From positions 3,348,001 to 3,412,000 of the forward strand of contig CATNEN010000037.1 of NCBI GenBank assembly GCA_950097015.1: DNA of 64,000 bases. Reading direction: 5' to 3'. Positions 11,963 to 34,901 of this stretch are shown piece after piece; within the stretch, counting starts at the first letter, position 1, and the number at the start of each line of letters is the position of its first letter. A model generated the notes under the pieces. It was given only the letters and a program-made list of their open reading frames with translations. It made no database searches and had not been told where the DNA came from. Position numbers and translations under genes: made by a program. The stretch is from Macrostomum hystrix (taxonomy: Eukaryota; Animalia; Platyhelminthes).

Positions 11963-11997
11963 AGTCTACCACATAGTCCGAGCCTGAAATGAGGTCA

Positions 11998-13758
11998 TTT
12001 AAACAGTGAGGTAAATTCCACATAGTCCACCGCATAATAAGGTTTCTTAAACCCAGGTCGGTCGGCAGTCTCTAGCACACCATGATCGTCTCGGTGTCCC
12101 CTGAGAGCAGAGCCACTCCTTCCACAGACTAGGATGGCACGCACAATGGAGCTGAGGATATGCCTGTTCTTTGCAATCTGCTCCTGCCTCTGTGTTGCCA
12201 ATCGACTGTCAATGTGCTGTTCTGGCACCATTCGCTTGAACTCCTGTGCTCTCAGTACATTGTCTTTGTGGTAGTTGGTATGCTCGTGAGCGCAGAGATA
12301 GCCATCTGCTCCCAAGAGTCTTGCGTACTTTTGCAACGGCTCATGAACTAGTCTTCCCAATTGGTGACCTTGTTGCCCTTGCTGAGTACCAAATAGCACA
12401 CAAACTTTGCAGAACAAGCCACTCTTTACATGTGAGTATGCTAACCAGGGTTTGTCGGCTAGATGACTGTGCCTCAGGAATCTCTTTTCTATTTTGCCCT
12501 TTGTCTTTCGCTCTTCAAATGGCATTGGGTAGGAACTGGGGGGCTCCCACGTTTGCGTCAGGAAGGCTATCTTAGTGGCACTGTCAGCAGCAGGATCGAA
12601 TAGACCTATGTCAAAGTCAGACAACTTGCTCACTTGTACTTCATTGGCTTCTCTGGTATCTCCATTGAACTCGGCATCGCATTCAGAGGTGCCGGCTTCA
12701 GCTTCGTCTGAATTACGAGTACAAGTTGTAGCAAATTGTTCCGAAACAGCAACAGCAGAAGAACTAGGTCTCTCAGCAGTGGCAGCAGCAGCAGGAGCAG
12801 CAGAAGAAGAAATGAATCGGATCTCAGCAGCAGTAGAAGCAGCAGATAACTTTGCAGCAGCAGTGGCAGGACCAGGTGGTGTAACAAAAAAGTGCGTTAG
12901 CAATTTTTGTCGCTTTGCGTCACGCTCTAATGGAGAAGATGCTCGCTTCATTCTTCGTGATTGTGCATCATATGTTAAGACTTGCCAAATGGATTTTACG
13001 GACTTCAAGTTCAATTGGTGTTGAGTGTAGACAGATAGCCGGGACTGGCTCAAACTATTTGTCCTTTGTAGCAGGCTGTTAAGCTTTCGCTGGTTTTCGC
13101 AAGACGCATTGACGCAATGTACATTGCTCTCAAGTCTGAACCCCAAAATGGGGGAGGAAAAGCCTTTCAACCCCTTTTCATTCCATTCCCCCACCCCAAG
13201 TCTCTCTCAGAGTCTCAGTGTCTCTCTCACCCACAGACCAAGAAATATAACTAGACTGCGCATGAGGGTAAAAAAAGTTGTGCCTTTTTCCTAGTAGGAA
13301 AAGTGGCACCCCAGCGCCCACTCCCCCACGATCGATAATTGTGCCCGGGCCTTTCTTCTTACCCTCAGCCAACTCAGCTTGTCGGGGTCTCTTTTTTTTC
13401 CACTGTCATTTGGTCAAAAACAAGCCCAAGCAAGAAATGCGGGATGCGCAGTCTAGTTATATTTCTTTTCTTGGTCTGTGCTCTCACCCTACTCTTACTA
13501 TCATAACTTAACTTAGCTTCTCTCTTGCCAATGGTTTGGCTAGAAATAAATAAAACCGAACCGACAATGTTCCATGGGATGCAATTCCATTCCAAGGAAA
13601 AGCAGACAGACCATAGAAGCAATGGAAATATAATGAAGAACTTGGACTTTGTGGGTTGAGGAGCCCAAAATTAAAATATCTCCCTTCCATGCAAGTCCAG
13701 CCACGGCGAAAGTGGGGGGGGGCGGCCGCCCCCCCGCCCCCCCCTGGATCCGCCACTG
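11998..13758 (-). mobile_element. 5' part of a hAT-family element: TIR at 13758, plus truncated ZMYM1/THAP12(DUF4371)-like transposase ORF (likely ATG 12951, stop 11995)
   Basis: Minus strand starts CAGTGGCGGATCCAGGGGGGG, a typical hAT TIR. ORF contains PWLAYS..SGLFCKVCVLF...HE...YH (TTF-type Zn finger) and NRHILSSIVRAILVCGRSGSALRGHRD, but stops before the DDE core. Confidence 0.8.
13232..13480. mobile_element. 249-bp MITE with about 30-bp TIRs and an 8-bp TSD (CTCTCACC)
   Basis: CACAGACCAAGAAATATAACTAGACTGCGCAT at 13232 and ATGCGCAGTCTAGTTATATTTC[TTTTC]TTGGTCTGTG ending at 13480. CTCTCACC lies at 13224-13231 and 13481-13488. Confidence 0.85.
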
Positions 13759-17963: not shown

Positions 17964-19034
17964 TCAAACTGTGCTCTCGTACATGACACAGATCAAAGTT
18001 AAGTGCTTATGCTTCTCATGACACTCGGTTGTCATAGCAACAGACTCCACCGGTGCCACAGATTTATCGCTTAGCTGGTGTGGCCGCTGCCGCCGCTGGC
18101 GTCTGTCTTGAAGCCGTTGCCGCGCCGCCGCCAGGCCGGTTGTGCAGGCCAGCAGCGCGAAGTTGAACAGAGAGTCCAGCTCGACCAGCGTGTTCACCAC
18201 CAGCTCCGTGACTGGAGTCTTGCTGCGAACGAAGCCACACACATCTGTGGGGCTCTCCAGCAGGAGGCAGCTGACGGACAGAGCCACCACTAGGCGCACC
18301 GCTTGCCTTTCGCGTCGAAGCATGTGACTCTGACGTCGGTGGTTCGAATCTCCGCGGCCGTTGGCGGCCGAGGCGGGCGCCATCGGGGCGGAGGCTGAGG
18401 CGGCTCGCGGTCTGGTGATGGCGGCTTTGTGCAGAGCGCACACGGTGAGGCAGGTGGCCGTAAACACGGACGCAATGGGCAACACGCCCTGATAGGTGTA
18501 GAATGCGATCTCAACCGCTTGTTCGTATCGCATCGGTGCTTGGCGTGCCGCAGACTCCTGGGCCAGCACCATCAGTATGCTGAGACAGAGGGCCACCAAG
18601 CCTGCCGCAGTTTCCATAGCAACCAAATGCGTCAATTTGAAAGCCGAGCCAGCGCGAACGGCCAGCGGGCAGAAGACGGCTTCGACGCGTGACCAGGAGA
18701 TGAAGGCCATTGTCCAGTTGCGCATGGTCAGGGAGAAGCGCAGTAGGACAGACAGGGCAGTTGCTCCAGGGCCCTGCTGCGAGGATCTGGCGAGGTGTCG
18801 CGCGTAGAAGATGATGACGGAGGCGTGGAAGAGGGCCTCAAAGACGGACATTGCTGCCAGCAGGCGCCGAAGCACCGGGTGCACCGGGGCGCTGGGCCTG
18901 GCGAAGACCGCCAACGCAATGATGGAACAGAGGACATTGACGCCGGAGAGTGGAATGTAAGTGAGCGGCTCAAACGGGTGGACGGCGCCAGTCGTTGCTG
19001 AAGTGGAGCCGTTGCGTCCCACGGTAGTTGCCAT
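17964..19034 (-). CDS. Intronless rhodopsin-like (class A) 7TM GPCR, orphan/peptide-receptor-like, 356 aa
   Basis: Seven hydrophobic segments, N-glycosylation site NGS near the N-terminus, TM3 MRNWTMAFISWSRVEAVFCPL (DRY replaced by SRV), TM6 CLLLESP, TM7 LDSLFNF. Confidence 0.8.
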   Translation of the reverse strand: MATTVGRNGSTSATTGAVHPFEPLTYIPLSGVNVLCSIIALAVFARPSAPVHPVLRRLLAAMSVFEALFHASVIIFYARHLARSSQQGPGATALSVLLRFSLTMRNWTMAFISWSRVEAVFCPLAVRAGSAFKLTHLVAMETAAGLVALCLSILMVLAQESAARQAPMRYEQAVEIAFYTYQGVLPIASVFTATCLTVCALHKAAITRPRAASASAPMAPASAANGRGDSNHRRQSHMLRRERQAVRLVVALSVSCLLLESPTDVCGFVRSKTPVTELVVNTLVELDSLFNFALLACTTGLAAARQRLQDRRQRRQRPHQLSDKSVAPVESVAMTTECHEKHKHLTLICVMYESTV

Positions 19035-20741
19035 TACAACGTAAAATATATTATTTGCTTCCGGAAGACGATAGAAAAATCACGAGTCTCGCACGGCTAT
19101 AACTTATATTCGCGTGAAATTTCATTTGACCTACCAGGCAGCCAATGCTCGGAGACCGAGTCGAACTGTCAGCCGACCAATCTAATAGATTACAGATGAG
19201 GCTAAGAGGCTGCGCCGGAGCAGGCCCAGGGGAAGACTGGAAGAGTTCGATGAGGACTGGATGATGCGTACGGCGAATGGGAAAGTTTTGGGAAGTTTTG
19301 CACCGCCTTCGTGTCTTGACGTGTGCTGCATATTCGTGGACGCAGCTAATACACCGGCGTGGGAAAAGAGCGAGATGAAAGTGACAGTAAACTTTTCGCA
19401 CTCAATATCAGGTTTAGCTAACTGACAACTGGAGCCTCGCTTTTGGAATGCAATGAATTATTTCCACGATAGAAATTTGCTGTAGTTGATTGATTCGTTT
19501 ATTTTTTTGCTGCCGATAGGTGTCCTTGCACTGGGAAATCCAATGTACTTTCTGTGTTGACTACGTGTACCAGTAGTGGTCTACTGTGTTGTTACTTTCT
19601 GATAGAAAACACGTATATAGAAAAAAAAAGTATTAAAAAAATATTAATTCGTTAGTGCAAACTCGCGTTGTGACTACATTGTACTTTGCATTCCCATTGG
19701 GACAGACAGAAAAGAAGGCAAATTTTGCAAATGCTCGTAAGAGCAGTAGAAATTTGCATACTCTCCAGCTTCGTACCGTATACAATTTCGGTCGTTTCAT
19801 TTTTTTTCGAGTACTGTTCGGGAATCCGCTTCTGGTGATTCTGTCTGGCTCATTAGTACGGCTATCGTTTTTGGCTTTGTCCGTCTGTCTATACACATTC
19901 CGATGTTCACAACCAGATTCAAGAGGTAAGAGCTAGCAGGCTACAAGCACCGGATGCATCAGCTTCTCTCCACTCAATGCCCACCCTGTGTGAGCGCGAC
20001 ACGTGCCTCGTCAGTAGCCCTGCCAAGTCGACGCAATGCAATCCGTCTATAGTGGCGACGACCAGTCGAGGTGTTAGTTTTCGAGTCGCGGACAAGTATA
20101 GCGAAAATTACTCCTACTACACTTCTACACACAAAAACGACGCTGGAGTGGTTTATCGCGAGCACTTCCCAATCGCTCAACCTATAGAGCTTTGATAAAA
20201 GCTCTGCCGAAGAACGAACGAACCGTGCGAGCTGCGGAGTCGCGAGTCAGTTCATAAGTGCATATTTCGGTGTCTGTCTTGAGTATCTGGCCCAGTCGTG
20301 CTTTGCTAATCCCAAGGCCAACCAGATTTAGATTGGAAGATTCATGATCAGACGAGGGAACTTTGTAGTGCAGTCGATTCGTCCCAAGCGTAGCGGCTCA
20401 AATTTTCTATAGCTTAATTTGGGTCCGTGCATCTGGCTGTTCAATTGCACGAAAACGTAGAAAAAATGCCGCCAGGACTCGAAACTTTATTCTTCAGTTT
20501 TCTTAGGAACGGTTCTTACATGTATGTTGGTCGTTGCCTGAAGACTCGACTAGTACTCCACGGGTCGCTTACACGGCTTACACTAATAGATAGGCTGTCC
20601 TGCTCATAAAGCCAACTTTTTCTTAGCCTTCCTTGCATTATAAACGAGAATAATTTAATTTCGCTAGCACTGAGTACTGGGGCGATAATTGCATCTCGGG
20701 ACAGTGTGGAGAGGCCAAGCGAGCGACGTGTTAAAAGAAGC

Positions 20742-20918
20742 TCAACGACTGGGAAGCCTTAATGCGATCCGCTTGCTTACCGTTCGTTCGAGCCTTTCTA
20801 TCAACTCTTCTGGGAGTTCGATTCTCTCGCCGCTTCTGTGTCGAGTCGCATGCTGCATATGCAGCTCTCGCACACGCACTTTGTCGAGTTTTTTGTCTTC
20901 TGTTTTGTACGAGAATTC
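20742..20918 (-). CDS. Possible terminal exon of an unidentified gene (EFSYKTEDKKLDKVRVRELHMQHATRHRSGERIELPEELIERLERTVSKRIALRLPSR*)
   Basis: Acceptor TCCGTTCTACAG|GAA in frame with a 58-codon charged, helical-looking ORF. Upstream exons not found. Confidence 0.3.
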   Translation of the reverse strand, partial: EFSYKTEDKKLDKVRVRELHMQHATRHRSGERIELPEELIERLERTVSKRIALRLPSR

Positions 20919-21660
20919 CTGTAGAACGGAAATACAAGTGCTTGTCACCTGCGTACTGTGTAATTAATGCGAGAAAACTCACGACTCGTAAAGGCGACTG
21001 CTGCAAAAAGTAATCAAAACTGGGAAGTCAGTCAGTTTTACACAGAGTGATTTGAGTTATTATTGTAGCTCCTTGTACGAGGGAATGAGCTCACAGCCAA
21101 TGGAAAAATGAAAATTCCTAATTTGGGGTGCAGCTTTGGTTACTGATTTCTGCTCCCCCATCGACGTCATGCGTTAAAAACTGCGGGAAGCTACACCCGT
21201 ATGTAGCCTATGCACGAGTATGCTCCTCGTGGCACTGACTCACTTCTCTAATTGAGTACTCTGGATTAGATTGCGCAGATATTTTTTGGCTGAGTGGAAC
21301 ACTTTATCTATGAGCATAGCTTCCAAATTTATGCTATTCCATAAAAGGTTATAAACAGAACAACTAGACAGACATTGCACAGGGAGCTGGCCAGGCCTAT
21401 TTTAACCCTTACAGTAGGAACTGCTCGGGCACAAGTGACGCCCTACCAATTTTGCATTGCCTACCCCCTCACCCAGGGTACATGAGCATGAGGGTGACAG
21501 CATGTACATGGGCGTAAGTAAAGTGTACACTTGTGCATATATTTATACCCTACATTCCTCGTTTGGCAAAAAGGAAACCGAACATTTACACGGTCGACAC
21601 ATAAACATGCCGTGAAAGCCATAATATTTCCAGCCACAGCAACTAACTGCAAGCCACTTG

Positions 21661-22499
21661 ATGCTAGACATGGACATTAACGCGCTAATACTCGCAGCTC
21701 GTTGCGGCAGCTGTGAAAGGCTACAAGCTGGGCTGCGGCAAGCACCGGCCTCTACAAGGCGGCGGAGCCTTCTAAATACTCTCTTGACTACGGCGGCTAA
21801 CTGGGGCCACCTGCCGGCGGTCCGGTTTCTGTTGAGAGCCATCGAAGAATATGACTGGAGTCAAGATGCTGGCAAGCTCGATTCGAACTCTGGCGCCGAT
21901 GTCGTCAATAACTTCTTGTTCGGCGCCACCGCTTTGCACCTTGCAATACGTCATAGACATATTGCCATAGTCGAAGAAATTCTAGCCTTCAACCGCGACC
22001 TGGTCAATGTAGCCGACGATGACGGCGTTACGCCTCTGGCCGAATGTTGTCAGCACCAGGTTGGGCTGGAGCTCACCGACCTGCTACTCCGATGGGGAGC
22101 CGATCCCAACCTGGGCTGTCGTCGCTACCAGCGCCGGCCGCTGCATTGGGCCGCTAGCGCGGGCGACCGGAACCTGACGCAGCGCCTGATTGAGTTTGGC
22201 GCCGATCCTGGCGCGCAGGACTGGCGCAACCGTTCGGCGGCGGACGTGGCCTCGTCAGCCGGGCATCCCCAACTTGAGAGAGAGCTTCGTCGAGCTGAAA
22301 CTGATGGCTGGCTGCAGCGTCGAGGGTGTACATCATGGCAGTGCGTTTTGCTTTTTATAAACCAAATAAAATTGCTGATTTTGTTAATATATCCAGCAAA
22401 ACGTATTTAACTTTCTCTTTCAGGCCAGATGTTGTGACATCCAGTCCACCCGAACGCTTGCCACAACAACAGCAACCATTGACGAGCCAGCTTCCAAGA

Positions 22500-22534
<35 letters not shown>

Positions 22535-23876
22535 ACAACAGAAAGAGCTTGCAAACCAGCTTCCAAGACATCAGCAGCAGCAGCAGCAACAGCAACAGCA
22601 GCAACAACAGCTGGAGCTTTCAAACCAGCTTCCAAGACATCAGCAGCAGCAGCAGGAGCAGCAGCTTTCAGCAATAAATCAGTTGGTGCCAACTTGCCCT
22701 ACTGCCTTGACTGCCACGGTGGCCTCGGTTGTGAATTCAAGTCGAATCCGGCCAGCAGTTCCTTTTTATCAACAACAGCAAGAGCGGCAGTGGCAGCAGC
22801 AGTCACTGCAGTCTCCGTCTCGCTACCGATCGGAGTCCGAGCCGCCAGTGCAGCAAATCCAGGCCCCGCTGCCGAGAATCCCAGATCCTCTATTTGACTG
22901 GGATGCCACCGCTGCCTCGTTAGTTGCCCCGGCCATCGATCTGAGCCAGTCTCAGCCAGCCGCAACCCTCCACCAGCTGCAGCAGACATCCCCTCCTAGT
23001 CCTCATAGGCGCTTTACAGAGCCTTCGTTGCAGCCTCTGCAGACGTCAACACGGGCCGAGCCGGCCTATCCGATGTCGTCGATGCCGCGCGGTCTCTGTT
23101 TGGTCTTCAGCAACGAACACTATACCGGCCGTGAGCTTCAGGACAGGCCTGGCACCAGCCACGACGTGAAGCGGATCGAACATTTGTTCGAGGGCCGTCT
23201 GGGCTTCGTTGTAGAGGTGAAAAACGACCTGACTGGTCAGCAGATGCTTGACGAAGCAGCGGCTGCCGCCAAGAAGACTCACCGGCATAGGCGAGCCGAC
23301 CTTTTCGTTTGCTTTATTTTAGCACACGGTGACTCGGGCGGCCAGGTCTACGGCGTTGACGGCGTCAGAGTCCCACTGAACCACATTGCGGCTGCCTTTG
23401 ACGGAACTCGCTGCCAGGAGCTAGCTAGCAAGCCGAAGGTCTTCTTCGTGCAGGCCTGCCGCGGCAATAGGGAGGTCAACGATGCCGTTACTGTCCCCGC
23501 CCGGACGGAGTCAGATGGTCCAGCGCGCCCGCCAACGCTGCTGGAGTTGTCACCGAAAGACACCGATTTCCTCTATGGCTTCGCTTGTTGCGAGGACCAC
23601 CTGGCCTACCGCCGCAGCGACTCCGGCTCTCTGTTCATTCAAACCCTCTGCGACGTCTTGGAAGAGCGGCTGACTGACAAGTCAGCAGAGGTTGATGTGG
23701 ACGACGCCTTGACGGAGACAAGAAGACGTATCTCTGCAGGGCCAGTTGAACAGGCAGTCCGGCTTGTAGGTAAAGCCGGATCAGCAGCGGATATTCAGCG
23801 GATCTACACGTATATGGTGCCAGAGGTGCGAACCACGCTCAGGATGAAGCTGAAGCTGAGCCCGTGCGAATCCTGA
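21661..23876 (+). CDS. Ankyrin-repeat + polyQ + caspase (peptidase C14) fusion protein, 2 exons: 21661-22325 and 22424-23876, about 705 aa
   Basis: Exon 1 has about 5-6 ANK repeats (TALHLAI, GVTPL, WGADPN, RPLHWAA, FGADP). A 98-nt intron GG|GTGTAC...TTTCTCTTTCAG|G is phase 2 at both ends. Exon 2 has polyQ, then RGLCLVFSNE...R.GT..D, FILAHGD (His 23325), PKVFFVQACRG (Cys 23457), and DFLYGFAC...AYR...GSLFIQTLC. Confidence 0.85.
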
Positions 23877-24070
23877 CGCCATTTAGCTATTCTCTGTGAA
23901 CACTTAAAGTGAAGCGAGTGTTAAAGTTTATTAGAGTTTTCAACTACTTTAGAGTATAATTTTCTGTGGTTTGAATTTCGCAATTTTCTGCAACTTTGTA
24001 CTTTATAGGACGCTATCCCAGTTTGCATATGCATGTAGCATTCGCTATCAATGTATTAAAAAAATTCAAT

Positions 24071-24076
24071 AATAAA
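24071..24076 (+). promoter_or_regulatory. Candidate polyadenylation signal AATAAA for the ANK-caspase gene
   Basis: AATAAA about 195 nt after the stop codon, in AT-rich sequence. Confidence 0.35.
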
Positions 24077-25052
24077 TTATAGATGAACAGTTTCTTGTCA
24101 ATATCGTCATATTAAATCTCACCTTTGAATTGTGAGTTTTAGTATATTAGATTTGCTATTTTAGCCCCTCGGAAGCGCAAAAATTAAATCTGGATCAAAT
24201 TAATCCTCTCATTTAATAATGCCCTCCTACGCAAATAAGCAAATAATAAAAAAATGCGCATACTTTGATTTCACACTCTTAACACACTTTTCGGCACCTC
24301 TGAGCGGCCATTTTTCCCGCTTAATTTTATTTGATTGAATGACATGAGAGATGGGGTGGGTGAACAGTCTGATGTACATTGATTACACGAGCTGAGGGAT
24401 AGTTAAAGAGACAAATAGATGATAATGGGAGTCTATAACTTAGGCATCAATTTTAAGTTGGTTTTATCTTTAAAACACCAGAAGATCAAATATACCCGCT
24501 CTAATAAATTGGCAAACTCTGCTGGTTTATCATTGTCATAAACTTGGCTTGTGATTGTGGCTGGGAAAAATTTCTTTACAATCAACAGTTTCGTAGTCGT
24601 AAATAACTAAACAATAAGTTCTAGCCTAATTGAGCTGCAGTAAACATGTTTTCATCTCTTTTCAAGACGAGCATGTAATCACTTCAAAATAAAACTTGAG
24701 CAGGTAGAAATATAAACGTACTACACTCTAAACAATATTTTTCTACCACGAGAGAAAATGTGGACAATAGAAAAAAGTAGGTCAACATCATGTTACAACT
24801 ATTGTTTACTAAAGAATAAACGTAAAGGTAATTTTGATTGGATCAGGAAGCGTGAGAACATTAGAAACGCTCACTTGTTTTTTTCGGAAAAAAGCTAAAA
24901 ATGCACCAAAGAAAAACTTTTACTACAGAGCCTGTTTACTACACCGCACACATCGGTATTTAACCTCGTTGATAAGAGCCTCACAAAGCCAAAGGATATT
25001 TGTCTTAAGTCAAAGTAAAGGATTTCTACTGAACTTCGTCATCCTGCAAGCC

Positions 25053-28000
25053 ATGAAACATTATTCTCTGCTCGTCCTTGTGGGCTCTGCTCTCGCTCTT
25101 CAAGTGTGCGCTCAGCTCGGTAAGTTTCCTATTCTCTGACAAAAATCTCAAAGAATACTTTTTAAAGTCAGAAATTCCCAAGCCTAGGACAAGTACAGTT
25201 TCTTTTCGCGACGGTGGTATAATTCTATTCACAACCGGTTTTGTGTTGATCCCCACCAGATCCCGTGTGCGACAGCTGCCCCTCAAAGGACTGCACCTAC
25301 GACAAGGGACTGCTATGCAGCTGTAGCGGCGTCAACCGCACCATCGAGATTATCGACCCGGGTGACCGAAAGTACTTCAACGTCTCGTTGGGCTTCGTTG
25401 TAGACGACACTGGCAGCATGTTGACTGAGATCGCGTCCGTGAAGGCCAGCATTCAAGCTGTCGTCTGTGAGTTCACGTCATTCTTATGACATTCGTAAAT
25501 GAAAATTGTTTAGCAACAACTGGGTTTTCAATTTTAGCTGCCGTGCACAAACATTTCGACAAGCTCGTTATCGGTACTTTCAACGATCCGTACATTTCAA
25601 ACATGATCGAGTCGTCAAATGTCACTGCAATCAACAAATTCGTGAACATCATTAACGCTCATGCTGGCAGTGACTGTCCGGAGATGGCACTGCATGGCAT
25701 TCAGGAGGTGGCGAACCGACTGAGTCCCGGATCCGTCATTTTCGTGTTCACTGACGCGAGTGCCAAGGACCTCACTCTGGAGCCCGCCGTAAAGGCCTTG
25801 CTGCTGTCCAAGAACATCCGGTTAAATGTGCTGGCCACTGGAAGTCTCTGCGGCATGGGTGCCGAATTCGACAGACTCACGAACGCAACAAACGGAACCA
25901 TCTACGTGACACCAGACAAGTCTGATGTCGACTATGTGATGAACTACATCAAGAACTTCGCCAAGTATGATATTCGCTTCATTCGCGGCATGCCGACCAC
26001 TTTGGTTGACCTAAAGATTATCGCCAACGGAAGTGAGTCACAAAGTTAATTGATTAATTTTTGCATGTGCATTGCTATTTAGTATTTCTATTGATGTTTT
26101 CTCATGTATTTTACAATAATTACTTACTACTGATATATGTATTTACTATACTTTGTTGCAGCCTGCTCGTGTAAAACCAGCATCGAAAACTTGGTGTGCG
26201 CTCCACCCCCGACCAGAATCTGTCCATGCCCGGACGGCTTTGAACAGGTCGAGGTGAGGAAGAAGGTCTGCAAGCCCTGTCCATGCGAGCAGCAGAAATA
26301 CGGCTCCCTGGGATTCGTCATGGATGACACCGGATTGCTGGGCAGCGTGTTCTTCTCCGTGCGCACTCTGGTGGCGGGCATCCTGGCAAACAACACGGTG
26401 TTCAAGGACTTCATTGCAGCTCGGTACGGCGCACCTTCTGTAAAAAAGCTCATCCACTCCAGTAACAAGACCGTCATCCAGAACTTTGTCAACGTGATCT
26501 CACCGGCAATCGGAGGCGACTGTCCGCTGAATGCTGCTGTGACAGGCATCGAGGACGCGGCGAAGGAGGCCTTGAACAACTCCATGCTCATTTTGTTCAC
26601 GGACTCATCGGTCAACGACGCAAGCAGGCTGCCCTTTGTAAAGGCCCTGTTGCTATCCAAGAAAATTAAACTCTTTGTGGTCGCAAGTTCATTCTTTTGT
26701 GGTCCCCCAACAAGGAAAGAACTAGTTGATCTGGCCAATGTCACTGGCGGAGGTGTACTGAGGGCGACTTCCAAAGTGTCCGTAAACGAGGTGATTAAAT
26801 TTTTGATACCCGAATAGAGACAAAGCAAATTCTTTAAATCGCTAGATTTTCATTAACTCGTGCGTCTTCGATTCTAGGTTCTGGATTTTATCGCTCTGCC
26901 TGCCGCTGATGAACTTTCTCCACCTTGTTTGGACGACTTGCACTCATTGAAGCGTGCAGCTCGTATGCGAAAACATTACCGATTTTCTGAAAACCCGACC
27001 CTATGCGTTTTTATCCCCTCTATTTATTCTCCATCCCTTCTAATTGCAGCCTGTTGCACATGGATGATCGTTCACAAGTGCAAACCAATTGAATGTAAGA
27101 CGCCCGGCATGCTGTGATGCTTCAAACAAATAGGCTCTTTCTGTGTAGCAATCACGCTTTCGCACTCACCTTTGCTCACAGCTCCCTGCCCGCATGGATA
27201 CAAGCGAGTTGTCACGCACAACCGAGCCTGCGCACCACCCAAAGCCTGCAAGCCAAAGCCCGCAGGATCCCTGGGATTCGTTATTGACGACACCGGATCG
27301 ATGGGTGCCGAGATCTTCGCGGTTCGCATCCAGGTGGGATCCATCATGGCCAATAACACTGTGTTCAAAGACTACATGGTTGCTCGGTTCGGCGATCCTT
27401 ACACGAAAAATGTCATCCGATCCAGTAATGAGACCGTCATCCAGAGCTTCGTGGACGGCATCTTTCCGTCAGGTGGAGGCGACTGTCCAGAGTACGCCAT
27501 GTCGGGCATCGAGGATGCGGCGAAGGAGGCCCTCGATAACTCTGTGCTCATTCTGTTCACAGACGCTGCGCCCAAAGACGCGAACAAGACCGCTGATGTT
27601 GCTGCGCTGCTGGTGTCCAAGAAGACCAAACTGTACGTGATCGCCACTGGCACCTTCTGCGGCCCATCAGTGTACAAAGGAGAATTCGACTACCTGGCTA
27701 GAGCCACCGGCGGCTCCGTCATGACCCTCACTGCCAAGACGTCAGTCGGAGAGGTAGTAGTCTTTGCTAAACCTAAAGCACAAACTGTGAGGTTTTTATG
27801 GACTCGTTGCTTCACCGTAAGAGTTCCAAACAACACATGTTGCCTCGATTTCTTCAGGTGCTAAAATTCATCGGACTGGCTGCTTCCGGCATTACAACGT
27901 TCAGCTCGATGCCCGCTACGTTCGAAGACCTGAAAAACTTGGCGCCTTGTAAGTGATTGTGCTTGCGATTTTCATGATTTGTGGTGCACGAGCTAATTAC

Positions 28001-28087
28001 GCTCGTACATCGCATCGCATTGCAGCAAGCTGGTGCTGGACGGAGGAGATCTCGACCTGCATGTGCGAGTGCTACATGCGGAAGTGA
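25053..28087 (+). CDS. Secreted protein with three tandem hemicentin/VWA7-type vWA domains and Cys-rich linkers. 9 exons: 25053-25119, 25260-25466, 25538-26032, 26162-26790, 26878-26962, 27050-27094, 27182-27753, 27858-27948, 28026-28087; about 750 aa
   Basis: Signal peptide MKHYSLLVLVGSALALQVCAQ. Three SLGFV(V/M/I)DDTG motifs, each followed by DCP and LFTD/VFTD. All eight GT-AG introns are phase-compatible (1,1,1,0,1,1,0,1) and the frame is open to the TGA at 28085-28087. Confidence 0.85.
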
Positions 28088-29702: not shown

Positions 29703-32397
29703 ATGCCAGGCCCCGATCTGCAGCAGGAACAGCAGCTGGTGCTGCTAGAAGATGAAGTCTTTGACTTCGACGATCTGACTGAGTTTCAACAGCAACAACC
29801 GCCACCGGCTCCGCCGCCGCCGCCGTCGCAGCAGCAACAAACTGCGCGTCGTATATCCACTGTCGACCAGGATGTCAAAGACACTCGAGCCATGATTGCC
29901 AGCATGCTGGAGGGCCAGCGACCTCTCATGACAATGTCAGCCATGGACACGACGCCTGCAGCCTACCTCGAGTACCTCAGGACCATTGTGAACTGCGGCA
30001 GGCTCCTGCGTCAGCCGGCCCTGCCGCCGGACCTTCGACAGTCGGTGGCGGCCCTGCTGGCGCGTGCCAAACCGCTGTTCTGCGCCAACGCGCTGAACCT
30101 CATCGTTCAGACGGTCGCCGCGATCAAGTGGAGAAGAGCATAGCGTGGCCGGAGCAGCTGTGCCGGCATTCTGGGGCGCCACATTCAGCCAGCACGAGTG
30201 TCGTCTCTGGGTAGAGCTGGTTGAGACGCTGCTCTTCTTCTGGGCCGACAATGGCCGCGGCGGCAGCGGTGGCAACGGCAGCAGAGATGCCGCCTTTGTC
30301 GAGTCGTTCACTCTGGGCCTTCTTGATCGACTAGTTGAACTTCGATGCGCCTACTCGACTCCTGTTTCGGCAGCTTCAGACGAAGTCGGAGTCGAGCGTC
30401 TGGCCAGCGAGCTGGGCCGTCGGCTTCGCCCGAGGCACCTGCTGGCGCTGGGAGCTGGTGCTTACGCCTCACCTGGCATCGGAACCGGCCAGCGAAAACG
30501 GACATCACCGGCAAAGTCAGTGGCTCAGCAAATTCCTTGCTCCGTTCATACACATCCGCTTTCATTTGTCTTCCCCATCCGCTCCGATCCCTCTTCTAAA
30601 TCCGCTCCGATCCCTCTTCTAAATCCACTCCGATCCCTCTTCTAAATCCGCTCCTTTCCCTCTTCTAAATCCGCTCCGATCCTCTTCTAAATCCGCTCCG
30701 ATCCCTCTTCTAAATCCGCTCCGATCCCTCTTCTAAATCAGCTCCGATCCCTCTTCTAAATCCGCTCCGATCCTCTTCTAAATCCGCTCCGATCCCTCTC
30801 CTACATCCGCTCCGACCCCTCTTCTAAATCCGCTCCGATCCCTCTCCTACATCCGCTCCGACCCCTCTTCTAAATCCGCTCCGATCCCTCTTCTAAATCC
30901 GCTCCGATCCCCTCTTCTAAATCCGCTCCGATCCCTCTTCTACATCAGCTCCGATCCCCTCTTCTAAATCCGCTCCGATCCTCTTCTAAATCCGCTCCGA
31001 TCCCTCTCCTAAATCAGCTCCGATCCCCTCTTCTAAATCCGCTCCGATCCCTCTCCTACATCCGCTCCGACCCCTCTTCTAAATCCGCTCCGATCCCTCT
31101 TCTAAATCCGCTCCGATCCCTCTTCTAAATCCGCTCCGATCCCTCTTCTAAATCAGCTCCGATCCCTCTTCTAAATCAGCTCCGATCCCTCTTCTAAATC
31201 CGCTCCGATCCTCTTCTAAATCCGCTCCGATCCTCTTCTAAATCCGCTCCGATCCTCTTCTAAATCCGCTCCGATCCCTCTTCTAAATCTGCTCCGATCC
31301 CTCTTCTAAATCAGCTCCGATCCCTCTTCTAAATCCGCTCCGATCCCTCTTCTAAATCCGCTCCGATCCCTCTTCTAAATCCGCTCCGATCCTCTTCTAA
31401 ATCCGCTCCGATCCTCTTCTAAATCCGCTCCGATCCTCTTCTAAATCTGCTCCGATCCTCTCCTACATCCGCTCCGATCCCTCTTCTAAATCAGCTCCGA
31501 TCCTCTTCTAAATCAGCTCCGATCCCTCTTGAGAATTCCTGTATCTCTCCGCCTACTCAGACACGCAAATCTAAACCGCACCATTCTAGATCCACTCCGT
31601 CTTCGACAAGACTTCGTGGCTCGCAGCGGCAGGCACAGCCTCTACAGCAGAATCATCATCATCAGCAGCAGCAGCACTCCCTGCTGACGGAGACCTTCGC
31701 TTGCTTTCTCGATGCTGCGGGCTACTTGCTGCCGGCTCCGCAGCGGCCTCTGCCTTTGGAGACGGTCAAAGTGGCTCTGGAGGCCGTCACTATCGAGCGG
31801 GCCAACTCTGCAATTCGCCTTCACCGGCCGGACGACTTCGCCGACAATCTGGTGCGCTTGCAGCGACTTCGACGAAGACTTAACATGCTTTGGCCGGCCG
31901 CAAACCCTTTGGCAGTCTCCGCCTTGCAACAGCAGCAGCGGCAGCTGAAAGCCGGCCTTGACTCGGCCGTCACCGCTGCCGGCGTCCGTGAGCCCGCCGA
32001 CCTCGCTGACCTACTGGTTGATTTCGTTACCTACGCCACGGCCGCCTGCGACTACGAGGCCGCCTGGCAACGAGCTGTTGTCAAGGACGCTGTGTCAATG
32101 GCGCCATTTTTAATTAGCCGACTTTCGACTGTCCTTGCGGCCAACATTGGACCAGCCATGGCGGTCCCCGGCTGCTGGGAGACCCTGCCCGAGCGGCTGC
32201 GCAATCAGCTGGAGCAGCGATCGGCCCGACGCTTAGCTTCGGTGACGTCTGCAGCGGCGGTGGCGGCGGCTGCCGCGCCGCCAGCGGAAGAGTCGAGCAG
32301 AGGCAACCGACAACCGACGACAGCTGTCGACTTCGACATTGTTGTACTAAAGCGGGCCGACATTCAGCCCGAGTTTCTGTCACCGAACTCTACTTGA
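29703..32397 (+). CDS. Uncharacterised helical/Q-rich protein gene, exons 29703-30515 and 31590-32397, with an apparent frameshift at about 30131
   Basis: GC-rich coding-like ORFs 29703-30143 and 30145-30515 abut out of frame. Donor AA|GTCAGT (30516) and acceptor TTCTAG|A (31590) are both phase 2 and lead into the 31726-32397 ORF frame. No family recognised. Confidence 0.55.
30575..31530. repeat. 22-24-bp minisatellite (ATCCGCTCCGATCCCTCTTCTAA)n in the intron of the uncharacterised gene
   Basis: Direct reading, about 40 copies. Confidence 0.95.
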
Positions 32398-32830
32398 GGG
32401 TGTCAGCGTTTGGTCAGTCTGTCTGCCCGAGCCTATGAGCCCGTTTTTCAATCAGCCAAAACTGCCATGATTATTCCGAAATCGGCGAAATTCATACTTT
32501 TCAATGCACCATTCACGATTTGATTCTTTAGTTACTGTTCTTAATATAAAAATTATTTTTGGAAACAATTTCCCTTTGATATAAAGCATGAATTTTAATC
32601 AAACTATCAGTTCAGTGTTCGCCTCCTTTTCAAATGCTGCCAAAATTCAGTCTATTCAAAAATTTAATAGTAAAAACTATCTAGAATGTAAGATTAGATA
32701 CAAAATTAAGCAGAAAAGAGGCCAAGTTTAACATATATTTTTAGCAATCATTTAAATATGTCGAGCGCATGTGCGTTCTGTCTACTCTTAGTAGGAAAAC
32801 AAGAAAATGCGTGAGTTTGATGTCGAGAAT

Positions 32831-34901
32831 TTATTTATTTCTCGTTTCGTATCTCTTGCCGCTGGCCATCATGAACACGAAGTCGTCGTAGCTGATGCGC
32901 CCGTCACAGTCCAGATCCGCTTCGACAAACATTTCATCCAGCTCCTCTGGCGTCGCCGAGATCCGCATGCTGGCTAGGCTGGCCGCCAGCTCCTCCCGAG
33001 TGATGTAGCCGTCACCGTTCTTGTCGAATACCTGCGGCGTGAACACTGTGAACTGGTGAACACTGTGAACTGGTGAACACTGTGAACTGGTGAACACTGT
33101 GAACTGGTGAACACTGTGAACTGGTGAACACTGTGAACTGGTGAACACTGTGAACTGGTGAGCACTGTGAACTGGTGAACACTGTGAACTGGTGAACACT
33201 GTGAACTGGTGAACACTGTGAACTGGTGAACACTGTGAACTGGTGAACACTGTGAACTGGTGAACACTGTGAACTGGTGAGCACTGTGAACTGGTGAGCA
33301 CTGTGAACTGGTGAGCACTGTGAACTGGTGAACACTGTGAACTGGTGAACACTGTGAACTGGTGAACACTGTGAACTGGTGAACACTGTGAACTGGTGAA
33401 CACTGTGAACTGGTGAACACTGTGAACTGGTGAACACTGTGAACTGGTGAACACTGTGAACTGGTGAACACTGTGAACTGGTGAACACTGTGAACTGGTG
33501 AACACTGTGAACTGGTGAGCACTGTGAACTGGTGAGCACTGTGAACTGGTGAACACTGTGAAACTGGTGAACACTGTGAACTGGTGAACACTGTGAACTG
33601 GTGAACACTGTGAACTGGTGAGCACTGTGAACATACCTTAAAAGCGCCCCTAGTTTCTTCAGTCGGTGTGCGCCGCCTCAACTTGATCATGATCATCTGG
33701 ACAAACTCTTCGAATTCAATGGAACCGTTGCCATCCTGATCAACCTCGTTAACAATGTCCTATTGTGTGAGGATTTTTTTGGCTTCTTTAGTTCATTTGT
33801 CTGAGAATTTCGAGAAGGGAACACGTCAAAATAATAGTGTCATGGAAGAAGTGTCAGATGAGAAGAGTGTCAGATGTGAAGAGTGTCATGGAAGAAGTGT
33901 CAGATGAGAAGAGTGTCAGATGTGAAGAGTGTCATGGAAGAAGTGTCAGATGAGAAGAGTGTCATGGAAGAAGTGTCAGATGAGAAGAGTGTCAGATGTG
34001 AAGAGTGTCATGGAAGAAGTGTCATGGAAGAGGTGTCAGATGAGAAGAGTGTCAGATGTGAAGAGTGTCATGGAAGAAGTGTCAGATGAGAAGAGTGTCA
34101 GATGAGAAGAGTGTCATGGAAGAGGTGTCAGATGTGAAGAGTGTCATGGAAGAAGTGTCAGATGAGAAGAGTGTCAGATGTGAAGAGTGTCATGGAAGAA
34201 GTGTCATGGAAGAGGTGTCAGATGAGAAGAAGTGTCAGATGAGAAGAGTGTCAGGGAAGAAGTGTCAGATGAGAAGAAGTGTCAGATGAGAAGAGTGTCA
34301 GGGAAGAAGTGTCAGATGAGAAGAGTGTCATGGAAGAAGTGTCAGATGAGAAGAGTGTCAGATGTGAAGAGTGTCATGGAAGAAGTGTCAGATGAGAAGA
34401 AGTGTCAGGGAAGAAGTGTCAGATGAGAAGAGTGTCAGATGTGAAGAGTGTCATGGAAGAAGTGTCAGATGAGAAGAGTGTCAGATGTGAAGAGTGTCAT
34501 GGAAGAAGTGTCAGATGAGAAGAAGTGTCAGATGTGAAGAGTGTCATGGAAGAAGTGTCAGATGAGAAGAGTGTCAGATGAGAAGAGTGTCAGATGTGAA
34601 GAGTGTCATGGAAGAAGTGTCAGATGAGAAGAGTGTCAGATGAGAAGAGTGTCAGGGAAGAAGTGTCAGACGGTAAGAGTGTCAGGTGAGGAGAGGAGAT
34701 CAGAGGAGTGGAGCATGACATCACAGAAAGGAGTGTGACCTTGAGCTCGGAGTCCGTCGGATTATGTCCCAGAGACCGCATCGCGTGGCCCAAATCGTCA
34801 ATGGTGATGCTGCCACAAGCGGATCTGTCAAACAGGTTGAAGACGGTTCTTAGCTGAGCAACCTGCTCCTCTGGTATGCTGTCACTGTCGAAGTCAGTCA
34901 T
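32831..34901 (-). CDS. Calmodulin-like 4-EF-hand protein, 3 exons: 34740-34901, 33637-33759, 32831-33031; 161 aa
   Basis: LRTVFNLFDRSACGSITIDDLGHAMRSLGHNPTDSELK|DIVNEVDQDGNGSIEFEEFV...RGAFK|VFDKNGDGYITREEL...EADLDCDGRISYDDF. Two phase-0 GT-AG introns. Too divergent to be canonical calmodulin. Confidence 0.92.
33040..33632. repeat. 17-bp minisatellite (GAACACTGTGAACTGGT)n occupying nearly all of CaM-like intron 2
   Basis: Direct reading, about 35 copies. Confidence 0.97.
33835..34680. repeat. Compound repeat of GTGTCAGATG(A/T)GAAGA and GTGTCATGGAAGAA units in CaM-like intron 1
   Basis: Direct reading of interleaved 14-17-bp units sharing a GTGTCA core. Confidence 0.93.

Follow-up and report, generated by a model that had tools for sequence, protein, structure and literature searches.

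An expressed gene of the flatworm Macrostomum hystrix joins ankyrin repeats to a caspase domain

The stretch analyzed here, referred to as the window, comprises 64,000 nucleotides (nt) of Macrostomum hystrix DNA (GenBank assembly GCA_950097015.1, contig CATNEN010000037.1, positions 3,348,001 to 3,412,000 of the forward strand). At positions 21661–23876 it contains one expressed two-exon gene, which joins ankyrin (ANK) repeats to a caspase. Platyhelminth “ANK caspases” have been described by Horkan et al. 2024 (Genome Biol Evol, PMC11463336) and that paper credits their first identification, in Schistosoma, to Lee et al. 2014. The clade was reported as “specifically restricted to parasitic platyhelminths”, without free-living flatworms, and as having arisen with parasitism (PMC11463336). 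The present results conflict with this restriction. ANK caspases are not confined to parasites, and free-living Macrostomum has both a direct relative of the parasite clade and a lineage-specific expansion of its own; this follows from the expressed gene in the window, from several clusters of such genes in Macrostomum lignano, and from the position of one of them, Mlig019067, as sister to the parasite clade. The architecture is therefore already known, and the window gene adds a member and a free-living distribution.

Gene structure and expression

Logan contigs of four runs were aligned to positions 19000–24500 of the window. Three of the runs (X3, X4 and X5) come from one organism and one study, with the run type unrecorded; they behave as RNA, because the intron is absent from their contigs and coverage is zero at 19000–21391 and 24336–24500. 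The outermost contig ends in these three runs delimit a transcribed span of 21540–24116 on the + strand, with 5′ ends at 21540, 21579 and 21589 and 3′ ends at 24061, 24082 and 24116, the latter near an AATAAA at 24071. One contig per run joins 22340 to 22424 across an 83-nt GT..AG gap and reaches 70 nt into the second exon, to 22493, and a second contig covers 22670 to 24061–24116. The depths of the 5′ and 3′ contigs are about equal in each run (13.4/13.2, 32.5/35.1 and 20.8/22.5).

Coding exon 1 (21661–22340, + strand, 680 nt) ends in phase 2 and encodes residues 1–226, which contain six ankyrin repeats according to Pfam Ank families and AlphaFold2. It is followed by the phase-2 intron (22341–22423, + strand, 83 nt, GTGCGT...TTTCAG), whose retention would give a stop codon at 22408–22410. 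Coding exon 2 (22424–23876, + strand) encodes a linker, the caspase domain and the stop codon, and is defined by the open frame and by contigs over 22424–22493 and from 22670 on. The spliced coding sequence (21661–22340 plus 22424–23876) specifies 710 amino acids (aa), with a lone terminal stop. The open reading frame (ORF) of the ANK part opens at 21658/21661 on the + strand, and the start codon is probably the second ATG, at 21670, which would give a protein of 707 aa, since this ATG aligns with Met1 of the closest M. lignano protein and has the better context (GACATGG, with A at −3 and G at +4, versus TTGATGC at the first ATG). The G+C fraction is about 0.57–0.60 in both coding parts, 0.50 around the intron and 0.34–0.37 downstream of 23900, so that the gene boundaries are also visible in the composition.

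An initial annotation, made from the letters of the sequence, had read the ANK and caspase ORFs as two parts of one gene split by a 98-nt intron at 22326–22423. The GT..AG borders, the phase, the acceptor at 22423 and the fusion itself are borne out, but the donor had been placed 15 nt too early: the contigs of X3, X4 and X5 all use GTGCGT at 22341 and not GTGTAC at 22326, which shortens the intron to 83 nt. The 22326 donor, which no contig supports, was dropped; rare isoforms may be lost from contigs, and minor use of it is possible. As both donors are phase 2 and lie 15 nt apart, the proposed fusion was right in kind and five residues short, with a single ORF of 710 aa instead of about 705 and a junction that reads ...LQRRGCTSWQ/PDVV instead of ...LQRRG/PDVV. 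In the same way, the transcripts expected to span 22325/22424 do exist in three runs, at 22340/22424. The outer limits were correctly placed, the ANK ORF starting at 21661 (Pfam Ank_2, E 7.3e-21; Ank, E 1.5e-20) and the caspase ORF ending at 23876 (Peptidase_C14). The further argument, from the lack of a good independent ATG in the caspase half, holds only approximately, as in-frame Met444 and Met447 lie directly before p20; the fusion is supported by the transcript evidence and not by the ATG argument.

A tblastn search of the window with the spliced protein returned only the self match, with no paralogue or tandem copy. A separate contig of about 800 nt has a higher depth (36–58) and matches the gene over only 35 nt around the KVFFVQACRG codons (23432–23466), with 3 mismatches, and is unlike it beyond; its source is probably a paralogous caspase expressed in the same animal. 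In addition, two 2024 runs labelled as two other organisms (X1 and X2) contain near-identical fragments at 22670–22768 and 23303–23521, with 0 and 1 mismatch; this could be due to carry-over, or the runs may come, under a different label, from this species or one very close to it.

Domain organization of the protein

The protein contains three parts: the ANK array, a long linker and the caspase domain. Together, the first two place 441 residues before p20, which makes a long pro-domain that includes a protein-interaction module. The AlphaFold2 model of the exon 1 product, built from a 16-row alignment, has a mean predicted local distance difference test (pLDDT) score of 90.1 and contains six helix-turn-helix pairs, equivalent to six ANK repeats (five to six had been counted initially); a disordered loop separates repeats 2 and 3. 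No CARD or DED pro-domain of the classical initiator caspases was found by Pfam in either exon product. The absence of a death fold, already noted in the initial annotation, was thus confirmed, Pfam giving no CARD, DED, Death or PYD match; a hidden death fold in the linker was considered and rejected, as Pfam searches of this region to E<=10 gave low-complexity noise only.

The linker (aa 227–441, 215 aa; 22424–23066, + strand) belongs to no Pfam family and is disordered and rich in Q, P and S by composition, with 28% Gln and 13% Pro (61 Q and 27 P), as the initial description of a Q/P-rich linker had it. It contains a 69-nt tandem repeat at 22487–22663 on the + strand (2.6 copies, 93% identity, Tandem Repeats Finder), which encodes 23-aa units of the form NQLPRH-Q(n)-(K/L)EL. 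Pairwise alignment with the M. lignano protein reveals three common islands, SRYRSESEPP (22818–22847), AIDLSQSQPAA (22932–22964) and RRFTEPSL (23007–23030), all on the + strand, and the QLPRH units are also kept there. The M. lignano protein has two QLPRH units instead of the three found here, which indicates that the length of the linker changes between species.

The caspase domain, with p20 and p10, occupies aa 442–710 (23067–23873, + strand) and was identified by Pfam, by a sequence search of the PDB, by AlphaFold2 and by Foldseek. The Pfam match to Peptidase_C14 (PF00656; MEROPS family C14A) reaches 158.7 bits, where the cutoff is 21.4 (E 2.5e-46), and the AlphaFold2 model has a mean pLDDT of 88.9 and a predicted TM-score (pTM) of 0.87. 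Foldseek returned caspase-7, caspase-8, CED-3, caspase-6 and caspase-3 at E values of about 1e-21 to 5e-24, with caspase-7 at the top; for caspase-7, caspase-8 and CED-3 the E values are about 1e-23 to 5e-24 and the TM-scores 0.73–0.87. In the PDB sequence search human caspase-8 is the best match (E 1.5e-30), and caspase-7 reaches 2.4e-29.

The catalytic motifs are intact, as initially described, and were compared in an alignment of 38 caspase sequences (A2). The AHG motif with the catalytic His528 (23322–23330, + strand) has its His and Gly (alignment columns 87 and 88) invariant in A2, and the QACRG motif, with the catalytic Cys572 and the S1-pocket Gln570 (23451–23465, + strand), has Q129, A130 and C131 invariant. 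The first S1-pocket arginine, Arg468, lies in DRPGT (23142–23156, + strand; R27 nearly invariant and G29 invariant), and the second, Arg623, in AYRRS (23604–23618, + strand; R182 invariant). We take Arg468, Arg623 and Gln570 to be the counterparts of Arg179, Arg341 and Gln283 of caspase-1 in the Asp-specific S1 pocket. The inter-subunit linker (23472–23519, + strand), delimited by model confidence and alignments, contains two candidate self-cleavage sites, EVND/A and TESD/G. It is the sole low-confidence stretch of the caspase model (domain residues 139–146, pLDDT <50). The second site is kept in M. lignano as PELD/G, followed by PA (an xExD/G site), and the linker site aligns near the VETD region of caspase-8. 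The conserved motifs and this site provide the protein with its catalytic apparatus and with a position at which self-processing is plausible, and we infer that it would be an active Asp-specific protease, cleaving itself at the inter-subunit linker.

The Macrostomum lignano orthologue and the neighbouring genes

The best database match of the spliced protein is BOX15_Mlig006436g2 of M. lignano (P0001, 625 aa), which has ANK repeats and Peptidase_C14 and is named “ANK_REP_REGION domain-containing protein” in UniRef. The two proteins are collinear from end to end (E 4e-159, 45% identity), the ANK regions being 52% and the caspase domains 63% identical. When P0001 was mapped onto its DNA (locus L001), the gene was found to have a single 144-nt GT..AG phase-2 intron, one base before the PDVV codons, at a codon position homologous to the 22340/22424 junction. 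The downstream gene is syntenic, tblastx aligning 29856–33033 of the window with 10805–14022 of L001 at 59–90% amino-acid identity per segment, and the two proteins are sisters with full support (100/100) in the tree of caspase domains described below. Collinearity, intron position, synteny and sister pairing together identify the window gene, at the level of sequence, as the orthologue of Mlig006436. The orthologues share the lone phase-2 intron, the syntenic downstream gene, a C-terminal loop insertion and the xExD/GPA site; they differ in the linker, which is 85 aa shorter in M. lignano and has 2 and not 3 QLPRH units, and in the length of the intron (144 versus 83 nt).

Between the caspase gene and the syntenic gene, ORFs with three vWA domains are found at 25053–28087 (Pfam VWA_4, E 1.5e-24, 6.9e-17 and 4.3e-33). 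This neighbour is unrelated to the caspase gene, and tblastx found no counterpart of it in the syntenic M. lignano interval (8022–10805 of L001); it has been gained or lost between the two species. Upstream, two long GC-rich ORFs on the − strand, at 17964–19034 (356 aa) and 11995–13194 (399 aa), have no Pfam match.

Distribution and phylogeny of ANK caspases

An exhaustive profile search with the caspase domain yielded 5686 relatives at E <= 0.001, the best 150 of which were inspected for ANK repeats. These 150 include at least four ANK-caspase clusters of M. lignano: Mlig006436, Mlig000705/009621, Mlig001045 and Mlig019067. A word-based search seeded with Mlig019067 found the combination of ANK and Peptidase_C14 in Schistosoma mansoni, S. 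rodhaini, S. mekongi, Trichobilharzia, Cichlidogyrus, Hymenolepis, Taenia, Echinococcus and Anoplocephala, and also returned many DED caspases. Overall, the fusion is present in at least 18 flatworm proteins, and the nearest named relatives of the window caspase are mostly of the caspase-8 type. The architecture had been taken as new in the initial annotation; it is widespread in flatworms and published as the platyhelminth “ANK caspase” (PMC11463336), and functional characterization of it was not found in a literature search.

The matches that score highest after the orthologue were considered as closer relatives and rejected. They are proteins with two or three caspase domains, which rank high because their domain scores add up, not because they are more closely related. 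Many of the proteins P0007–P0043 contain two or three complete caspase domains (for instance, the 1011-aa protein of Anabrus simplex, a Mytilus fragment and that of Darwinula); each is either a true tandem-domain caspase or a gene model that merges a tandem array of caspases.

A maximum-likelihood tree was calculated from 41 caspase domains over 263 columns, with 9 neodermatan ANK caspases among them. The window protein falls in a Macrostomum clade (support 98/97) together with Mlig006436, Mlig001045, Mlig000705 and a caspase with a Ras/Roc pro-domain, and all the neodermatan ANK caspases together form the sister group of Mlig019067 (95/91). The window gene thus belongs to a Macrostomum-specific, fast-evolving subfamily; it has the architecture that defines the flatworm ANK caspases, but the caspase domain by itself does not prove that it is part of their clade. 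Placed as a whole, all the flatworm ANK-type caspases may form a single clade, which the approximately unbiased (AU) test does not reject (p = 0.52). Among the placements tested, grouping the clade of the window protein with DED caspases and without the parasite clade is the sole marginal exception (p = 0.095).

The sequence before the second S1 arginine (A2 columns ~245–252) is A-Q-R in Mlig019067 and in all the parasite ANK caspases, and S-(Y/F/W)-R in other caspases; the window protein has A-Y-R at this site. The A-Q-R signature is consistent with a sister relation of Mlig019067 and the parasite clade.

Two proteins, P0110 (M. lignano Mlig000293g2, 757 aa) and P0171, have a Ras/Roc small-GTPase pro-domain before the caspase. 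P0110 is sister to the ANK caspase Mlig000705 (100/98), inside the Macrostomum ANK-caspase clade, and this nesting suggests that an ANK pro-domain was exchanged for a Ras/Roc one. The only caspase reported from M. lignano by Horkan et al. was described as having a kinase-like pro-domain and as sister to the ANK clade (PMC11463336); on account of that pro-domain, P0110 looks distinct from it.

A search with the ANK region of P0001 gave only one further protein with ANK and Peptidase_C14, P0419 (758 aa, ENA).

Proposed function and alternative explanations

Taken as a whole, the results are well explained, and quite probably so, by an expressed Macrostomum ANK-caspase gene whose product would be an apical Asp-specific caspase. 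In such a mechanism the protein would be a cytosolic caspase zymogen with a six-repeat ANK array as its pro-domain, instead of CARD or DED. The array would bind a partner or scaffold and bring two zymogens together, which would dimerize and cut each other at the inter-subunit linker, and the activated enzyme would process downstream caspases or other substrates. The chances that the protein is an apical caspase with its ANK array as recruitment module, in place of DED or CARD, appear about even. FADD is reported to be lost in flatworms, and the route formed by FADD and DED caspases to be lost or reduced (PMC11463336); in the Macrostomum lineage the gene may stand in for this route. A contribution of the Q-rich linker to self-association is speculation. 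A similar role has been proposed for the parasite proteins, as ANK caspases “may be initiators” with a yet unknown activator, a function that is a proposal in that work too (PMC11463336).

Several observations weigh against this picture or against parts of it. The tree does not separate the fork among the Macrostomum clade, the clade of Mlig019067 and Neodermata, the DED caspases and the effector caspases, and a grouping of the clade of the window protein with effector caspases is not rejected by the AU test (p = 0.41). Since the clade is left unplaced, the term “initiator-like” refers to the long pro-domain and to analogy. Caspase-7 nearly equals caspase-8 as a match, both by sequence and by fold. 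Among the matches to the ANK region of P0001, generic ANK proteins of every domain of life predominated, and homology of the ANK arrays between subfamilies is not shown by them. Intron positions differ among the paralogues in the five gene models that were mapped; among the paralogues only Mlig000705 also has a phase-2 intron just past the ANK array, at a position that is not reliably alignable. The literature search found no biochemical or genetic data on any ANK caspase, the only sources being Horkan et al. and its preprint. Finally, no transcript contig crosses the CAG-rich repeat stretch at 22494–22669. This break is attributed to a limit of the assembler, and continuity over it is deduced from the genomic frame, which stays open, and from contigs of equal depth on the two sides.

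The protein could instead be a caspase of the executioner type, or a non-apoptotic one with a part in, for example, differentiation, spermatogenesis or remodelling; the ANK array and the linker would then serve only to direct it to a compartment or to its substrates. The result of the AU test for effector caspases is compatible with this, caspase-7 is the top Foldseek match, and the QACRG motif is that of caspase-3 and caspase-7, the caspase-8-type sequences in A2 having mostly QACQG. However, apical caspases typically have very long pro-domains such as this one (441 aa), the great majority of the nearest named relatives are of the caspase-8 type, and a sister group of paralogues falls with the parasite ANK caspases, which adjoin the DED caspases in the published tree (PMC11463336). 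An executioner or non-apoptotic role is therefore considered unlikely.

A second alternative concerns what the ANK array binds. It might itself recognize a pathogen or damage ligand and directly activate the attached protease, in which case the Macrostomum set would be a putative repertoire of innate immune receptors. M. lignano has at least four divergent ANK-caspase clusters and a Ras/Roc-caspase, the branches in the Macrostomum clade are long, and the linker with its repeats changes fast between species; moreover, the folded domains are 52–63% identical to those of M. lignano, compared with roughly 60–89% for the syntenic neighbour. Yet ANK repeats are generic protein-binding modules, the comparison of rates has a single neighbour gene as its reference, and the expansion may reflect the known duplicated state of Macrostomum genomes. 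Direct ligand recognition thus seems rather unlikely. Its extended form, in which the Macrostomum ANK caspases would be a diversifying repertoire of single-chain sensor-proteases, each array reading a different danger or pathogen cue and triggering cell death, is more doubtful still; if true, such a repertoire would replace the lost pathway of FADD and DED caspases and would date to the rhabditophoran ancestor and not to parasitism.

The ANK array could also inhibit the protease in cis, masking the active site or the dimer interface until cleavage of the linker frees it. Designed ankyrin repeat proteins act in this manner on caspase-2, -3 and -7. Designed ANK proteins able to bind caspases and inhibit them are cited in PMC11463336. 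The long flexible linker would let the array fold back, and conserved Asp-containing islands, such as AID/L in AIDLSQSQPAA, might serve as release sites. This scenario is drawn purely by analogy and is regarded as very improbable. Lastly, a separate ANK protein and a short-prodomain caspase translated from Met444 or Met447, with the fusion as an artefact of frame or assembly, would fit the in-frame ATGs just ahead of p20 and the lack of a single contig over the repeat, but is effectively ruled out by junction-crossing contigs that reach 70 nt into exon 2 in three runs, by the open frame through the repeat, by the equal depth of both contigs in each run, by an M. lignano gene model of the same structure and by the same fusion in at least 18 flatworm proteins.

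With an apical ANK caspase as the preferred reading, the interest of the gene lies in its host, and the architecture alone adds little, as it is already published and present in public protein databases. The existence of free-living members means that the circumscription of the ANK caspases should be widened, and not that the gene should be excluded from them. The origin of the family is pushed back before the split of Macrostomorpha from the other rhabditophorans, including the parasitic Neodermata, and this earlier origin implies a loss of the family in planarians. M. lignano is a laboratory model with RNA interference and transgenesis. Owing to this tractability, a free-living animal could serve to study what ANK caspases do, those of schistosomes and tapeworms among them.

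Comparison with known caspases

The closest known system is that of the platyhelminth ANK caspases. Like the window gene, these occur in flatworm hosts and have an N-terminal ANK pro-domain, which replaces CARD or DED, followed by canonical p20 and p10; their catalytic domain is nearest to caspase-8 and the DED caspases, and an apical role has been proposed for them as it is here. The window gene differs from the parasite members in its free-living host, its separate Macrostomum clade (98/97), its six ANK repeats and its polyglutamine linker; in the parasite proteins the ANK region is longer and the inter-subunit linker contains large inserts.

Caspase-8 and the DED caspases (human caspase-8 PDB entries 6px9, 1i4e and 4jj7) resemble the window protein in the fold, the catalytic dyad, the S1 pocket and the long pro-domain, and the inter-subunit linker site aligns near VETD/S. 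Unlike caspase-8, the window protein is devoid of death effector domains, recruitment by FADD is impossible, and it has QACRG instead of QACQG, with an identity of about 30%. Non-canonical pro-domains are found in other lophotrochozoan caspases, which include kinase-, ROC-, PARP-, Z-binding- and TIR-caspases (PMC11463336). These represent the same theme, a swapped recruitment domain placed before a caspase-8-like protease. The Ras/Roc-caspase P0110 of M. lignano differs from the window protein in the nature of its pro-domain, a small GTPase and not an ANK array.

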